Shown here one piece after another: positions 1,375 to 62,892 of a stretch of 64,000 nucleotides of DNA. Positions within the stretch are counted from its first letter, which is position 1; each line of letters begins with the position of its first letter. A program made the position numbers and the translations under genes. The stretch lies in the IMG/VR virus record IMGVR_UViG_3300042515_001753, positions 124,001 through 188,000 of that record; one strand, written 5' to 3'. The notes under the pieces were generated by a model. The model was given only the letters and a program-made list of their open reading frames with translations, did no database searches and was not told where the DNA came from.

Positions 1375-2132
1375 CAAATCACTCTTGTCTTTTCGTGACC
1401 GACTCTAATACGAGGATCGCACCAAATTTCAAATCCTGCTTCCTTTGCATCCAAACAGAATGATACATCTTCTCCACACATATCCTGAACTTCTCCGGAT
1501 TCAAAGACTTGCATCTTGGGAGCAAACCAGGGATACTTCATTTCGGAGTGTTCAAATACTCCGTGCTTAATCAGTAACCAACCAAATCCTGCATAATCAA
1601 CGGTGAATGGTTTACGACGCTTTGAGATACTCTCAACAGTTTCGTGATTCATAACTCCACCATTATTACGGAAGTCATCTTCTTCCATCCAGTGAGCGAC
1701 TGATGTGGTGTGCCCATCTTCTGTTGCATACCATCCCGATGCGATATCCCTATCCATCAGAACAAGTTGCCAGAATTTTTCAGTATTAAAGACAATATCA
1801 GAGTCAATCCAAAGTTGCCAATCATACTTAAGTTTTCCATCCCAAGGAAGCTGGTCAGGTCCACGAAGAACATTTGCACCAAGGCACTTGCATCTTGCAA
1901 AGTTTACCATCGATGAATAGTCTTGGGAGATTTGAATACTTGCACCGTTCTGTACAAGATCAAAACATAATTGAACAAAACTCTTTAGGTAGGCATATGA
2001 GACTCCTCTTCCAGGAAGACAAAAGACAATTGATTTGCCTCTCACCATTTCTTTTGCGAGTTCATAATCCCACTCAATTTCTTTATTTGATGCCACGGGG
2101 GCGTTTGCTTTTACGGTAAATCCTTTAGCCAT
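1374..2132 (-). CDS. GT-A fold glycosyltransferase-like protein
   Basis: WIDSDIVF DxD motif, GFGWLLI, GEDVSFC, IRVGHEK. Confidence 0.7.
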   Translation of the reverse strand: MAKGFTVKANAPVASNKEIEWDYELAKEMVRGKSIVFCLPGRGVSYAYLKSFVQLCFDLVQNGASIQISQDYSSMVNFARCKCLGANVLRGPDQLPWDGKLKYDWQLWIDSDIVFNTEKFWQLVLMDRDIASGWYATEDGHTTSVAHWMEEDDFRNNGGVMNHETVESISKRRKPFTVDYAGFGWLLIKHGVFEHSEMKYPWFAPKMQVFESGEVQDMCGEDVSFCLDAKEAGFEIWCDPRIRVGHEKTRVI

Positions 2133-2154
2133 AATTGAAAGTAGTTACTTCAGT

Positions 2155-2183
2155 ATCATACATCATTATGTATCTATTGTCAA
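2155..2183 (-). promoter_or_regulatory. sigma70-type early promoter
   Basis: TTGACA-N17-TATGAT upstream of the ATG at 2132. Confidence 0.75.
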
Positions 2184-2354
2184 TTACTCTTTTTCTGAGA
2201 GAATGACTTCTTCTCCATCTAATGAGAATTTAATTTCAGTATCCTCATACCAAGAAAGTTCATTAATAATTTGCTCGGGAATAATCACAAAATATTTTCC
2301 TGTAATTGGATCAACCTGTACGGACTCAAAAATTTCTCCGGAATTTTTTTTCAT
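2184..2354 (-). CDS. AbrB/MazE-like DNA-binding protein (56 aa)
   Basis: Own translation ...GKYFVIIPEQIINELSWYEDTEIKFSLDGEEVILSEKE fits the swapped-hairpin pattern. Confidence 0.55.
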   Translation of the reverse strand: MKKNSGEIFESVQVDPITGKYFVIIPEQIINELSWYEDTEIKFSLDGEEVILSEKE

Positions 2355-2566
2355 CTTCGTGTTTATAAAACCTTATTTTATTTTTATATAGCGAAAAAAA
2401 TTTTTATGTTTGGTGTTTATATATCTCTCGCTTCCGTAACACTTTGTAGGTTAGGGTAGTTAGGCGTTTTTATATACGGGGGCGCGGGACCCGGACGCGG
2501 CACCAAGGGGACTGTCCTATCACGAACGACCAGACTGCCCCCACACGAACGACCAAGGGGTAGGGG

Positions 2567-2746
2567 TCAGTACCCCAACCAGACCAGGAACTCACCGGCA
2601 TCGACCCCGCCGAAGGCAGAGGTTACCCCGTACTCAGTCCGGAAGTCATCGAACAGACCGTGCTCCTTTGCTGCCTGACAGGCGGTGCTCCACCTGATTT
2701 GCCCGTTGTCGTCGGCAGCGTTGAGAAGGATTTGGGAGAAGGTCAT
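2567..2746 (-). CDS. small early hypothetical protein
   Basis: Start reassigned to MTFSQ, after the repeated promoter/leader. Confidence 0.6.
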   Translation of the reverse strand: MTFSQILLNAADDNGQIRWSTACQAAKEHGLFDDFRTEYGVTSAFGGVDAGEFLVWLGY

Positions 2747-2823
2747 CAGGGTCGGTTGCTTTGGAACTGAGAGAATCATACCACGAATCGGGGGGCAGGG
2801 AACGAACCCCACCCCCACGAATC

Positions 2824-3090
2824 TCACCCCACCCAGGTCAGACGCTTCGCTTCGGGGTTGCACCAGTGCTGATGCCCCGGACCCTGCCAACCCACGAACG
2901 GGGTGTGAAGGTCTGCCAACTCAACAGCGGACAGACCATCATTCTCCCATCCCCGCGTATGGGAGTTTGCCTGATGCCCCTGCTTTACTTCCCATTCTGT
3001 GCCATTGAACTTAGGAAGGTTGCTGACCTTAGTTCCGACCCATACGGTGCTGCGGGTCTGGAGGTCGGATGCTTGGTTGTAGAGTGCCAT
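2824..3090 (-). CDS. small early hypothetical protein
   Basis: MALYNQ start follows the repeated leader. Confidence 0.55.
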   Translation of the reverse strand: MALYNQASDLQTRSTVWVGTKVSNLPKFNGTEWEVKQGHQANSHTRGWENDGLSAVELADLHTPFVGWQGPGHQHWCNPEAKRLTWVG

Positions 3091-3136
3091 TAGGTGGGTT
3101 GCTTTGGAACTGAGAGAATCATAGCACGGAATGGGG

Positions 3137-3301
3137 TCAGAGGGAAACCCACCCCTGCTTGATGCGGCGCTCAAGATGGCGGGCAGCAAGGTCCTCTTTA
3201 CGGGTCATCGCTGCCTGACCGGGACGGGGACCACGGCGGGGCAGGCGGGTGACCTTCATTTCACCAGAGGCAATGGCAGCGTTCAGTTCGGCAGAGGTCA
3301 T
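3137..3301 (-). CDS. small basic early protein
   Basis: MTSAEL start follows the repeated leader. Confidence 0.55.
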   Translation of the reverse strand: MTSAELNAAIASGEMKVTRLPRRGPRPGQAAMTRKEDLAARHLERRIKQGWVSL

Positions 3302-3372
3302 CGGGTCAGGTGTCGGTTGCTTTGGAATTCTACAGTATAGAGGGGGCACCGGTCAAGGTCCCCCAGAGGGTC

Positions 3373-3561
3373 TCACCCTAGGTGGTAGCGCGACCCGTTG
3401 GCATATGCCCCAGAGGTCACCAGATGCCGGTTCATTGAATCAACCCAGAGCTGCATTTGAGCAGGCGACTGGCGTAGGTCATCATTGGCAATAACCGTGA
3501 TGGTGCGACCGTTGGTGGGGTCAAACCAGGTCAGCAGAGCACGGTTTAGGTTTGAGTTCAT
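3373..3561 (-). CDS. small early hypothetical protein
   Basis: MNSNLN start follows the repeated leader. Confidence 0.55.
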   Translation of the reverse strand: MNSNLNRALLTWFDPTNGRTITVIANDDLRQSPAQMQLWVDSMNRHLVTSGAYANGSRYHLG

Positions 3562-3603
3562 CGGGGTGGGTTGCTTTGGAACTGAGAGAATCATAGCACA
3601 GAA

Positions 3604-3828
3604 TCAGGCGGCATCCCGCGCCGCTAGCAGCAGGGCATGAAACTTGTGGAATTTATGGGTCATTCCGATAGAGAGGGTCGGTCTCCCGTTGCTGCCCCCA
3701 TGAGGCAGAGTGAAGGTCTGGGCGATGGTGGGATGGGTGACCTTAAGATGCTTGCTACCGGGGGTGATGGTGGCGCCTGCCTTGCAGAGTTGGCGTTGAG
3801 CGTCACGAATCTTGACTGGTGATGCCAT
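3604..3828 (-). CDS. HicA-like toxin/RNase fold protein
   Basis: 74 aa, L.KAG....GSKHLKVTHP....TLPHG....LSIG resembles HicA (GSH..HP..P.H..L..G). Confidence 0.55.
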   Translation of the reverse strand: MASPVKIRDAQRQLCKAGATITPGSKHLKVTHPTIAQTFTLPHGGSNGRPTLSIGMTHKFHKFHALLLAARDAA

Positions 3829-3860
3829 CGGGGGGTTGCGGTTGATAGTATTGTAGCAGG

Positions 3861-4067
3861 TCAGCGGTCGTTTAGGTGCTGGTCAAACCCCCGTGCCATT
3901 CCCTCCAGAAAAGCGGCACCGATACCCTGCCAGAAGGTCGGGTCCTTGACGCTAGCGCCCAGGGCATCCATCCATTCCTGAGTGGTGGTATCAGCGATCT
4001 GCTGCCGCTGCTCTGGGGTCAGGTCATCCAGGAACTGCTGCAGGTCGTCGGTTGCGTTGCGGGTCAT
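3861..4067 (-). CDS. small acidic early protein
   Basis: ORF with its own promoter/leader. Confidence 0.55.
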   Translation of the reverse strand: MTRNATDDLQQFLDDLTPEQRQQIADTTTQEWMDALGASVKDPTFWQGIGAAFLEGMARGFDQHLNDR

Positions 4068-4117
4068 CAGAAGCGGTTGCGGTTGATAGTATTGTAGCAG
4101 GTCGGGGGTCAGACCCC

Positions 4118-4297
4118 TCAGATTCCGTTGAGGAAGTCTGCCAGTGCCTCATCGTATTCTGCTTTGGTTTGGAAGGTCCTCCCGTGGATGGTTCGGGGAT
4201 AGGTGGCATCCAAACCAGCGGCAGCGACGTTCCGGCAGTCCTGCTCATCGTATCCCATTTCAATCAGGGTTGCGACGTAGGGGTTGAAGGCGGTCAT
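4118..4297 (-). CDS. small early hypothetical protein
   Basis: MTAFNP start follows the leader. Confidence 0.55.
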   Translation of the reverse strand: MTAFNPYVATLIEMGYDEQDCRNVAAAGLDATYPRTIHGRTFQTKAEYDEALADFLNGI

Positions 4298-4349
4298 TCG
4301 GGTCGGTGTCGGTGGAACTGATGAAATCATAGCACGGAATGGGGGCAGA

Positions 4350-4466
4350 TTACCACCACCACTCGCCAAAGTTTTTGCCGTTGTGGGGGAGTCCTACGGC
4401 AACCCATAGGATGGGGATGATGAATGCGGCGGCGAGCAGGAGTCCGGCAGCGACATAGTGGTTCAT
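4350..4466 (-). CDS. small membrane peptide (38 aa)
   Basis: Own translation MNHYVAAGLLLAAAFIIPILWVAVG..., one hydrophobic segment. Confidence 0.45.
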   Translation of the reverse strand: MNHYVAAGLLLAAAFIIPILWVAVGLPHNGKNFGEWWW

Positions 4467-4554
4467 CGGGTCGGTTCGTTTGGTATGCTTTAGTCTACAG
4501 GGTCATCGGCGCCGGTCTGGGGCAGCGTGTGCCAGTCTGGCAATTGGTTAGGTA

Positions 4555-4704
4555 TCAGAACTGAATCTCACTTAGAGTAGGATTAGCAGCGGAATCAGGA
4601 CCGACACTATCAGAAACCCCATCAACAATTGAATCAAGAATTTGGAGAATTTGCTCACCATTCGAACCTTTAGCAAGGAGTGAGAGAAGGACATCGCGGG
4701 ACAT
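4555..4704 (-). CDS. small hypothetical protein (49 aa)
   Basis: Own translation MSRDVLLSLLAKGSNGEQILQILDSI... Confidence 0.55.
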   Translation of the reverse strand: MSRDVLLSLLAKGSNGEQILQILDSIVDGVSDSVGPDSAANPTLSEIQF

Positions 4705-4771
4705 AATGTAGAATGAAAAATGTTAATGAAAGTGTGGGAGAAGTTTAGAGTCATTCCCCAGGACTTGAGAT

Positions 4772-5032
4772 TTAGAAGTCGAAAACGTCGCCGTTGATTT
4801 CTGCGCGGTTGATTTTAGGGTCAGTCCATTTCACACCGTCGCGGGTTTCTTTGGCACCACAATCATACATCAATTCCAGCAGTTCTTCATAGCAGCAGAT
4901 ATCACGTTCTTCGATAGCATCCTGAACGTAAGCATCATTCTGAATCCAGAGAGCTACGTTCCAGGTTTCATAATTGGTCCAACCGTTGTAGGTTTGGTCG
5001 GTCAGGCAGGTCTGGTAGGTGGTGACGGTCAT
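4772..5032 (-). CDS. conserved phage hypothetical protein
   Basis: YNGWTNYETWNVALWI motif common in phage early proteins. Confidence 0.65.
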   Translation of the reverse strand: MTVTTYQTCLTDQTYNGWTNYETWNVALWIQNDAYVQDAIEERDICCYEELLELMYDCGAKETRDGVKWTDPKINRAEINGDVFDF

Positions 5033-5106
5033 TTGCTTGGGTTGGTTGGTATGAATCAATTATAAGGGGTGGAGAGGGTGCCATGGGCACCCGATGTGCC
5101 AGTTCC

Positions 5107-5304
5107 TCAGGCGGCACACATCAGGGCGGATTCCATACTCACCTCCCGAACATCCATCTTGGAGTAATCATAACCCTCCTGCTCCTCAAGATACACAAGG
5201 TAAGCATTTGCGGTGGAGAAGCAGTCAAACAAGCGGAGCGATTTGAAGTCCTCACCTTCATAATCCCAACCACCGATGACAGCGTAGACTTTAGTGATTT
5301 GCAT
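5107..5304 (-). CDS. small acidic early protein
   Basis: MQITKVYAVIGGWDYEGE; own promoter cassette. Confidence 0.6.
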   Translation of the reverse strand: MQITKVYAVIGGWDYEGEDFKSLRLFDCFSTANAYLVYLEEQEGYDYSKMDVREVSMESALMCAA

Positions 5305-5373
5305 TTGCTTGGGTTGCGTGGTATGAATCAATTATAAGGGGTGGAGAGGGTGCCAGAGGCACCCGGTGTGCCA

Positions 5374-5541
5374 CTATGCCAGGTGGGCGAACTGTGCCAG
5401 ACTGCTGGGGGCGATGTGGGAGGGGGACCCGCAGGACTTGTAGAAGTCTACCATCCTCTCCGCCTCGTCAAGGGTGCCGAAGAACTGGGAGCGCCACTCG
5501 GTCTGGTTGTAGGGGGTCTGGTAGCGGACTTCGATTCGCAT
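5374..5541 (-). CDS. small hypothetical protein (55 aa)
   Basis: Own translation MRIEVRYQTPYNQTEWRSQFF...; leader and TAGAAT -10 upstream. Confidence 0.6.
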   Translation of the reverse strand: MRIEVRYQTPYNQTEWRSQFFGTLDEAERMVDFYKSCGSPSHIAPSSLAQFAHLA

Positions 5542-5747
5542 CGGTTGGGTTGCTTGGTATGGGATAATTCTACAGGGTCTGGGGGGTCTGGGGGCAGGTG
5601 GTGGACGGTTCGGAAAGTGGCACAGCAGCGGCAGCAGGGTGCTTCTGGGGCATTATGATAATGGGACAAGGGAGAGAGGGGCAAGGTCGCCCTGATGACG
5701 CAAACGGTCGGTACTGGGGCAGCTCTAAAATAAAAAAAGAAAAGTAT

Positions 5748-10981: not shown

Positions 10982-11134
10982 TTACACCCACGGTTCGAGT
11001 TCCTTTATGCTAGCATAGACATCTTCGTCACCTTCGAGGTCTAGAAGGTCCTTCCAGTCGGTTGTTTCTATATCTAGGTCATCATAGCACATAATGTCTA
11101 ATGTAACCCGTACAAGGCGCTTCTGGGCAATCAT
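10982..11134 (-). CDS. small acidic protein (50 aa)
   Basis: Own translation MIAQKRLVRVTLDIMCYDDLD... Confidence 0.55.
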   Translation of the reverse strand: MIAQKRLVRVTLDIMCYDDLDIETTDWKDLLDLEGDEDVYASIKELEPWV

Positions 11135-11165
11135 AGGAGTCTCGTTGTGTGTGTACTAGATTATA

Positions 11166-11306
11166 TCATGCATAGTGACGATATGCAAGTGATTCGTAAT
11201 CATGTGCATCTCGCGCATAATCCTCGTCGAGATCTAGTGTATACCCGTCGAGATCATATGATGCATCGATGGTGTATGTATAGTCGAGATCGTAGTCGTC
11301 GTACAT
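11166..11306 (-). CDS. Asp/Tyr-rich peptide (46 aa)
   Basis: Own translation MYDDYDLDYTYTIDASYDLDGYTLDLDEDYARDAHDYESLAYRHYA. Confidence 0.45.
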   Translation of the reverse strand: MYDDYDLDYTYTIDASYDLDGYTLDLDEDYARDAHDYESLAYRHYA

Positions 11307-11433
11307 AGCTCTTCGAGATGTGTATGTGTACTAGATGATTGTAGCACATATCTCGACGAGCTGCAAGTGTGTTCTCGACGAGATTGTTGTATGTATATAT
11401 GCGTTCTCGACTAGATTTTGTGTGCTTATGAGT

Positions 11434-11462
11434 ATTCTAGACTAGATTATGAGATTTGTCAA
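11434..11462 (-). promoter_or_regulatory. sigma70 promoter (leftward)
   Basis: TTGACA-N17-TAGAAT. Confidence 0.75.
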
Positions 11463-11514
11463 GGTCTCGTCGAGAATTTGTGTGGGTCTCAGAGTATTTT
11501 GGCGGGGGTGGGGC

Positions 11515-11543
11515 TTGACAAACTGCGATTCTTATGCTATACA
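11515..11543 (+). promoter_or_regulatory. sigma70 promoter (rightward)
   Basis: TTGACA-N17-TATACA with extended TG. Confidence 0.6.
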
Positions 11544-11556
11544 GGTAAAGGTTGCA

Positions 11557-11810
11557 ATAAGAACACACATTTATAAGCATTTAACTCATAAGAACACACA
11601 TTTATAAGTATTTTATCAGCATTTATAAGTATTTTATAAGTATTCTAACACATTTTCCCCAGAATACACCAGTTTTCCACAGGTTTTTCCACAACACTAT
11701 CAGTAATATAAGCAAATCATAACAAAAGAGTACCCTCACAATACTATAGTCGTTCTTTGCAATACTATAATAACATACATACAATACTATAATCGTTCTT
11801 TGCAATACAC
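11557..11810. repeat. AT-rich direct repeats and DnaA-box-like 9-mers
   Basis: ATAAGAACACACATTTATAAG x2, further (A)TTTATAAG copies, AATACTATARTCGTTCTTTGCAATAC x2; TTTTCCACA at 11673 and 11685, TTTTCCCCA at 11653. Confidence 0.7.
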
Positions 11811-11815
11811 CACAT

Positions 11816-12547
11816 ATGGCACAGGGTATAGTATACGTCATCATCAACAAAGAAACGGGGCACAAGTACCTGAATGCAACCACACTGTCGATGAATAAAG
11901 AATGGCAGAATCACATTCAGGCATCAAACAGAATGTCCACTCAACTTATACACAGAGCATTCCGTCAATATGGACTACACAAGTTCATGATTAAACAGAT
12001 TGATGAATGTGATGAGAAAATACTGGAAGATAAGGTAACTTATTGGTTTGAACAATATAAACCAGAATATAATGATCCTCTACCCAAAAAGAAACCAGAA
12101 CCTATTATTATTGAAGAACCTGTTGTTGTAATAAAAGAAAAGAAATCAACCTGGAGACAAATTAAACCAGAAGAAAGATCAACCGGTAAATGTTTAAGTA
12201 TCAGAGTTCAGGGTACACATATTGAAACAGGTGAAGTTAAGGAATGGGAGAATGCCAGAGCTGCTGCATTAGAAATTACGGGAGATAAAAAAAGAAACAG
12301 TAACGTATTAAATGCCGCAAAGAAAGGTAATACCTACTATGGATACAGATGGAAAGTATTAGACACAAAAACTCATAAACGATCAGTCAAAGGAGTACAT
12401 AAAGTGACTCACGTTGAAGTTCATTATGAAAGCATTAGTGAGGCAATACGACAGATAGGTGATGGTAGTAATGGAAGTGGTTTGTTAAAGAGTCTACGCA
12501 ATCCCAACAAATATACCTACAAAGGTTTCTTATGGTTTTATGAATAA
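11816..12547 (+). CDS. degenerate GIY-YIG homing endonuclease-like protein with two NUMOD1-like HTH domains
   Basis: GIVYVIINKETGHKYLNAT (YIG degenerate); YESISEAIRQ...YKGFLW. Confidence 0.65.
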   Translation: MAQGIVYVIINKETGHKYLNATTLSMNKEWQNHIQASNRMSTQLIHRAFRQYGLHKFMIKQIDECDEKILEDKVTYWFEQYKPEYNDPLPKKKPEPIIIEEPVVVIKEKKSTWRQIKPEERSTGKCLSIRVQGTHIETGEVKEWENARAAALEITGDKKRNSNVLNAAKKGNTYYGYRWKVLDTKTHKRSVKGVHKVTHVEVHYESISEAIRQIGDGSNGSGLLKSLRNPNKYTYKGFLWFYE

Positions 12548-62817: not shown

Positions 62818-62818
62818 G

Positions 62819-62892
62819 TGCTCATTGTGGGAATCTAACCCACCTTCGGCGCTTTATGAGAACGCTGCATTCAAACAGATTGCTAAATGAGC
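62819..62892 (-). tRNA. tRNA with CAU anticodon (Met or Ile2), atypical D and T loops
   Basis: GCTCATT/AATGAGC acceptor, GCGTT-CTCATAA-AGCGC, T-loop TTAGATT. Confidence 0.7.

Follow-up and report, generated by a model that had tools for sequence, protein, structure and literature searches.

The flagged non-coding stretch is one copy of a conserved element of T4-like cyanophages, in which a strong promoter facing against the genes is followed by tandem repeats, often by a cluster of sites matching the binding consensus of the host initiator DnaA, and then by very AT-rich DNA. The element looks like a replication origin, although this reading remains tentative and rests on sequence evidence alone. 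The window analyzed here, 64,000 nt in length, corresponds to bases 124,001-188,000 of the 233,886-bp IMG/VR record IMGVR_UViG_3300042515_001753, which is rated 100% complete. DNA and protein matches place this freshwater cyanomyovirus among T4-like cyanophages, the nearest named relatives at the locus being S-SRM01, S-T4 and S-SKS1, and the public sequencing runs that contain the stretch are lake-water metagenomes.

Organization of the locus

A sequence-only reading of positions 11434-11815 had described back-to-back sigma-70 promoters, AT-rich iterated repeats and three DnaA-like boxes (two exact, one with a single mismatch) within about 40 bp, at the edge of the early module; our analysis confirms this observation in all its parts. 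The three boxes lie on the plus strand, TTTTCCCCA at 11653-11661, TTTTCCACA at 11673-11681 and TTTTCCACA at 11685-11693, with starts 20 and 12 nt apart. TTTTCCACA is the form of the DnaA box reported for most cyanobacteria (PMC4674748), which supports the claim that it is the cyanobacterial form, and the cluster comprises two exact copies and one copy with one mismatch; binding by DnaA is inferred from the sequence only. Across the whole window, 9-mers within one mismatch of the box are not enriched (29 found against 35.5 expected). However, the exact 9-mer occurs only 8 times in the genome, and the pair found here is its only cluster.

Upstream of the boxes lie AT-rich iterons (11557-11651, plus strand), consisting of a unit of about 26 nt that starts at 11557 and again at 11588 (31 nt start to start) and a 21-nt unit at 11599 and 11620. 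All these repeats are unique to this locus in the genome. They form the least stable duplex of the locus, and the stretch 11598-11647 is 84% AT, which is in the top 0.5% of 50-nt windows in the genome. The iterons are preceded by a rightward promoter, P(+), at 11515-11543, in which TTGACA (11515-11520) is followed, after a 17-nt spacer ending in an extended-minus-10 TG and a c, by TATACA (11538-11543), with a predicted start near 11550. P(+) was read directly from the sequence, because the promoter scan skips it on account of its last base, A; relatives carry TATGCT, TACGCT or TAAACT at the same place. It points against almost every gene of the genome, as nearly all ORFs of 100 aa or more lie on the minus strand. 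Just upstream of P(+), at 11482-11514 on the plus strand, are a conserved GTGTGGGTCTC motif and a G-run (GGGGGTGGGGC).

Back to back with P(+), with 54 nt between the two minus-35 hexamers, stands the outermost leftward promoter, TTGACA (11462..11457) followed after 17 nt by TAGAAT (11439..11434), which matches the consensus at 11 of 12 positions and the minus-35 hexamer of which is conserved in many relatives. Two more sigma-70-like leftward promoters are inferred from the sequence and are conserved in the alignment of relatives: TTGCAG (11366..11361), a 17-nt spacer and TACAAT (11343..11338), preceding a 46-aa acidic ORF (11166..11306, minus strand), and TTGCAT (11188..11183), a 17-nt spacer and TATAAT (11165..11160), preceding a 50-aa ORF (10982..11134, minus strand). 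The 50-aa ORF is the first well-conserved gene transcribed leftward from the locus and matches phrog_12516 (E 9.7e-14). The 46-aa ORF has no PHROG hit, but its start region is conserved in the alignment; its DLDE-type codons carry copies of the TCGTCGAGA repeat. Palindromes of the form TCTCG-N-CGAGA at 11351, 11373, 11405 and 11465 (feature span 11351-11475), as well as at 11222 inside the 46-aa ORF, where they also encode DLDE-type residues, flank or overlap the leftward promoters. Seven of the eight genome-wide matches lie here, and relatives carry 4-9 copies in most of the 73 loci obtained with the 50-aa protein. The palindromes look like operators for an unidentified repressor.

The placement at the edge of the early module, between a virion-structural cluster and an early, host-takeover cluster, is supported by the surroundings. 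The left cluster, downstream for the minus strand, holds small ORFs, the phrog_12516 protein and an anti-restriction-like protein, whereas the right cluster holds Laminin_G_3 and CBM proteins and a match to a virion structural protein. A simple map of promoter density did not discriminate the extent of the early module. Contigs from four RNA libraries of three studies cover 9.5-11.55 kb of the window densely and the right side hardly at all; as these contigs come from relatives, break at the iterons and carry no information on strand or transcript ends, they support only that the left cluster is expressed, and transcription from P(+) is inferred. Elsewhere in the window, positions 2100-5700 form an island of 50-58% G+C with positive GC skew and no ORF above about 125 aa, in a genome of 37% G+C, short pieces of which match hypothetical-protein genes of other cyanophages, and a single tRNA-Met gene lies on the minus strand at 62818-62892.

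Downstream of the boxes, an exceptional plus-strand ORF (11816..12547) encodes a free-standing homing endonuclease with a GIY-YIG-like N-terminus and an HTH-like C-terminus, as judged from matches to phrog_3404 (E 7e-36), phrog_5123 (1.5e-5, a GIY-YIG phrog) and phrog_3855 (2e-3); there was no Pfam hit at 0.01 and no PDB sequence match. Its leader (11694-11815, plus strand) contains two 28-nt repeats, at 11738 and 11781, that hold a TTGCAA-17-TACAAT promoter-like site. Among the loci retrieved in this analysis (referred to by L numbers), the leader travels with the same endonuclease type in L026, L058, L060 and L145, and is absent from endonuclease-free loci. Of 37 loci with enough flanking sequence, 25 carry a plus-strand ORF of 120 aa or more at this position, most with one of at least three endonuclease-like N-terminal types (two GIY-YIG-like and one NUMOD4/HNH-like by its N-terminus). 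One could accordingly suppose that the repeats and boxes belong to the endonuclease cassette, as its promoter, leader or target region. This is very unlikely, because P(+), the iterons and the boxes are also present in endonuclease-free loci (L024, L051, L072, S-SKS1, S-SCSM1, S-CAM1 and Syn9), and because at least three endonuclease-like types share the site, so that the site precedes them. The endonucleases are therefore passengers at a hotspot, and the 28-nt repeats belong to the cassette.

Conservation of the element among T4-like cyanophages

To determine whether the arrangement is more than a chance occurrence, we used the 50-aa protein as a marker, which retrieved relatives in 73 IMG/VR loci and 7 named phages, and then the promoter core, which retrieved at least 120 more stretches; together these give about 114 distinct element regions. 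A profile of the core hits the genome of the window once (E 6.8e-27), indicating that the non-coding element is single-copy. By profile, it is also present in S-SKS1 (genus Llyrvirus, no family listed in its record), S-SRM01 and S-SCSM1 and, by eye, in S-T4, DSL-LC03, S-SCSM2R, S-CAM1 and, in degenerate form, Syn9 at about 52.6 kb. In every case, the promoter points against the coding strand. The shared order, in the orientation of the window, is the operator-like repeats, the GTGTGGGTCTC motif and G-run, the TTGACA-17-TGnTAnnnT promoter with even its spacer conserved, a short conserved start of the transcribed part, a tandem array, a box slot, and a conserved AT-rich block that is present where no endonuclease gene is inserted.

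Non-conservation of the boxes had been named in advance as grounds for rejecting an origin, and it was not observed. In 44 distinct loci of the first sample, exact TTTTCCACA occurs 31 times on the plus strand and once on the minus strand of the 450 nt behind the promoter, that is, 1.57/kb on the plus strand against 0.031/kb per strand in the rest of the same loci, and 15 loci have two or more boxes within one mismatch. In 75 further distinct loci, an independent sample, the figures are 31 against 2 and 0.92/kb against 0.009/kb, with two or more boxes in 16 loci. Thus, the boxes are 50-100 times denser than in the flanks. Start-to-start spacings are 9, 11-12 and 20-21 nt, about one or two helical turns, and when the loci are aligned on the last box, boxes 2 and 3 are nearly invariant while the spacers vary. 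The boxes recur in about a quarter of related elements, which carry 2-5 boxes on the same strand, and in five named phages from different genera. S-SKS1 has five 22-nt iterons followed by TTTTCCACA, TTATCCACA and TTATCCACA at 21-nt steps, S-SCSM1 has TTCTCCACA and TTTTCCACA 12 nt apart, and DSL-LC03 has eight boxes flanking the element. The variants seen in relatives (TTATCCACA, ATTTCCACA, TTCTCCACA and TATTCCACA) mostly differ at positions that the general consensus TTWTNCACA leaves degenerate. No Bac_DnaA_C match (DnaA domain IV) was found in the genome of the phage, so a host protein is the likely binder.

It should be noted that the boxes are optional. About half of the elements carry, in the same slot, a module of two direct ATTCTCAAT-type sites about 23 nt apart followed by an inverted copy, a putative binding site for an unidentified protein; examples are L040, L042, L055, L064 and L219-L235, as well as S-SRM01 (L001, about 4540-4590) and DSL-LC03 (L208). 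The two modules are almost mutually exclusive, with one locus of 75 carrying both, in addition to DSL-LC03, and the remaining elements carry neither. Pairs of boxes also occur outside this element: more than 118 viral stretches carry two TTTTCCACA boxes 1-4 nt apart, but only 8 of 80 of these (L089-L168) have the promoter core, others forming separate families, for example, with 4-5 boxes separated by GTTATACT-type spacers (L101, L110 and L167), and others again having high-GC contexts.

The sequence-only reading had offered a host DnaA sink as one interpretation. In such a sink, the boxes would titrate DnaA as the phage genome multiplies and shut off host initiation, as the E. coli datA locus titrates DnaA. 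The boxes are indeed of high-affinity consensus and clustered, and some relatives carry more of them, DSL-LC03 having 8 at the element and 13 in its genome against 0 for the reversed control pattern; in S-CAM1, the genome-wide figures are 13 against 1, which suggests further sites outside the element in both phages. Nevertheless, a sink is unlikely to be the main role, albeit not excluded, given that there are only three boxes per genome here, that their position, strand and phasing next to a promoter and AT-rich DNA are fixed, which a sink does not need, and that most relatives lack boxes altogether.

Of 50 loci examined for iterons, 35 have an array; 20 of these have periods of 20-23 nt, and most of the others are near-multiples of about 10.5 nt. 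The units are uniform within a phage and differ between phages, which fits protein binding on DNA rather than an RNA function. Some units resemble the half-site of RpaB/HLR1, but full HLR1 matches are no more frequent than in shuffled sequence (16 found against 10.8 +/- 3.3), and this identity was rejected. The possibility that the iterons are tandem late promoters on the minus strand was rejected as well: their reverse complement reads TATAAATG, which precedes none of 285 ORFs, whereas the late-promoter-like motif of the genome is ATAAATA or CTAAATA, strongly biased to the gene strand (63 against 9). A second motif, ACTGGCACA, is enriched 5-6 fold upstream of 12-16 ORFs of the genome.

We also considered whether P(+) drives a small non-coding RNA of about 150-250 nt, ending in the T-rich block, that would act in trans as a decoy or regulator. 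The promoter is near-consensus and conserved, as are the first 15 or so transcribed bases, and T-runs lie downstream. However, the transcribed body is not conserved in sequence between phages and consists of tandem repeats whose periods follow the DNA helix, its predicted structure is no better than that of shuffled sequence (z -0.35 here) and worse in S-SKS1 (z +2.61), no G+C-rich terminator hairpin was found, and there is no Rfam match even at E up to 1, although Rfam would not list an undescribed family. Such an RNA is therefore unlikely.

A putative origin and competing explanations

The interpretation given in the sequence-only reading, namely a replication origin, a DnaA sink or a DNA-entry pause signal, is partly supported, the origin being the best-supported of the three but unproven. 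What the analysis establishes is the arrangement itself: a near-consensus host-type promoter facing against the coding strand, helically phased AT-rich iterons, a slot that here holds three boxes of the cyanobacterial consensus and, in relatives without the endonuclease insert, a conserved and very AT-rich block. The function, that is, the firing of P(+), unwinding, a persistent R-loop priming leading-strand synthesis, DnaA binding and fork assembly, is inferred throughout. In this view, host RNA polymerase would fire P(+) early after infection, and the unstructured transcript, or the transcription itself, would open the AT-rich repeats, as is thought to occur at the T4 origins oriF and oriG. 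Host DnaA bound to the phased boxes would stabilise or position the opening, or stall the transcript, after which the gp59-like loader and gp41-like helicase, of the kinds that T4 uses at R-loops and both of which we identified in the phage, would build the fork. The divergent leftward promoters with their operator-like palindromes would drive the early genes from the same hub.

Several results weigh against this reading. Because only about a quarter of elements carry DnaA boxes, DnaA cannot be essential to the element. No run of CTA-type DnaA-trios is evident by eye behind the boxes, the order of boxes and AT block is reversed in S-CAM1-type elements, the transcript has no purine bias that would favour an R-loop (mean purine fraction 0.52 against 0.49), and no iteron-binding initiator gene was identified, the neighbouring ORFs being small proteins without assigned function. 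Cumulative GC skew, which is dominated by one-strand coding, gives no origin signal and is uninformative: it falls monotonically in this genome and rises monotonically in Syn9; the detrended maximum at 136.5 kb is confounded by the GC island at 126-132 kb, and the detrended extremes of the two genomes disagree in sign once gene orientation is allowed for.

The main rival, which we regard as possible but less likely, is that a junction of divergent promoters is purely a transcription-control hub and insulator between the late and early modules, without a role in replication. P(+) would then make an antisense transcript that collides with read-through from the late cluster, and proteins bound to the iterons and boxes (DnaA or the ATTCTCAAT binder) would act as roadblocks. 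Consistent with this possibility, the locus sits exactly between the structural and early clusters, operator-like palindromes overlap the leftward promoters, the RNA-library contigs cover the left side, with the limits noted above, and the box modules are interchangeable. Furthermore, DnaA-box complexes block transcribing polymerase, as reportedly seen in the work of Schaefer and Messer on E. coli asnC. However, this explanation does not account for the helically phased, fast-evolving iterons, the conserved AT-rich block, or the use of the sites of the replication initiator in particular.

A DNA-entry pause signal resembling the T5 injection stop is very unlikely. The likeness is superficial, consisting of repeats, palindromes and DnaA boxes in one non-coding stretch. 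The T5 signal needs a fixed end that enters first, but the element sits mid-genome, at 135.5 kb of 234 kb, the record has no end repeats, and related genomes (S-SRM01, DSL-LC03, S-SCSM1 and Syn9) assemble as circles, as expected of circularly permuted, headful-packaged T4-like genomes, so that no fixed end enters first.

Relation to known origins and significance

The combination of a conserved single-copy locus with a promoter, phased iterons, initiator boxes and AT-rich DNA is the classical make-up of an origin, and the element combines features of two types of origins. As in the T4 origins oriF (uvsY) and oriG (gene 34), which consist of a promoter plus a downstream DNA unwinding element and are primed through an R-loop, a promoter is followed at once by easily melted AT-rich DNA, the transcript is predicted to be unstructured, and the replisome is T4-type and includes a gp59-like loader; this layout matches the T4 origin logic invoked in the sequence-only reading. 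However, the promoter here is of the host sigma-70 type rather than a MotA-dependent middle promoter, it points against the genes, and the single-copy element carries iterons and, in many members, DnaA boxes, which oriF and oriG lack. As in iteron origins of plasmids and of prophage P1 (oriR), direct repeats of about 20-22 bp in helical phase lie next to consensus DnaA boxes and AT-rich DNA, and the repeats thus conform to the range of about 17-22 bp typical of iteron-type theta origins; yet no adjacent Rep-type initiator gene was recognised, the element belongs to a lytic T4-like phage with its own replisome, and the DnaA boxes are optional across the family. T4 oriE, with its iterons and the RepEA/RepEB genes, is a precedent for iterons at an origin of a T4-type phage, although the sequences are unrelated. 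The E. coli datA locus is likewise a non-coding cluster of repeats with DnaA boxes, but acts by titration and needs no promoter or iterons.

The cyanobacterial oriC unwinding module (the basal unwinding system, BUS) comprises tandem TTTTCCACA boxes, a spacer and DnaA-trios (PMC8287927; PMC4674748). The phage shares the 9-mer, AT-rich DNA lies nearby, and boxes 2 and 3, on the same strand and separated by a 3-nt gap (2-3 nt in relatives), satisfy the rule that tandem boxes are no more than 3 bp apart (PMC8287927). By contrast, in the host entries examined (S. elongatus and Prochlorococcus) the boxes abut and are followed by GCCC-type spacers and CTA repeats, whereas, by eye, no frame gives a contiguous run of at least three CTA-type trios within about 16 nt on the 3' side of box 3 in the window, L024 or S-SKS1; the loose NAN pattern is uninformative in AT-rich DNA. 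In the open-access literature searched, we found no paper linking cyanophages with DnaA boxes, although prior description cannot be excluded, and the only published statement found on how these phages initiate replication is a cited prediction of a single theta origin in Syn9 (PMC2984593).

Cyanomyoviruses kill a large share of the picocyanobacteria of oceans and lakes, yet how they start DNA replication is unknown, and the MotA-dependent origins of T4 have no counterpart in them. A conserved single-copy element carrying sites that match those of the host initiator is a concrete, mutable candidate that occurs in cultured phages (S-SKS1, S-SCSM1, S-CAM1, Syn9 and DSL-LC03) and is thus amenable to testing. 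A more far-reaching possibility, doubtful on present evidence but not excluded by it, is that T4-like cyanophages start replication at one dedicated origin, driven by host RNA polymerase, that recruits DnaA through a swappable slot, with an ATTCTCAAT-type site for another factor in other lineages, so that phage lineages would tie the start of their replication to different host proteins, and so to the replication or growth state of the host. The site is also a hotspot for homing endonucleases, which is relevant to how these genomes exchange DNA. If DnaA takes part, a T4-like phage would depend on a host initiator, which would link phage replication to the host cell cycle and to light or nutrient state, and the alternative box modules would mark a new axis of host adaptation.
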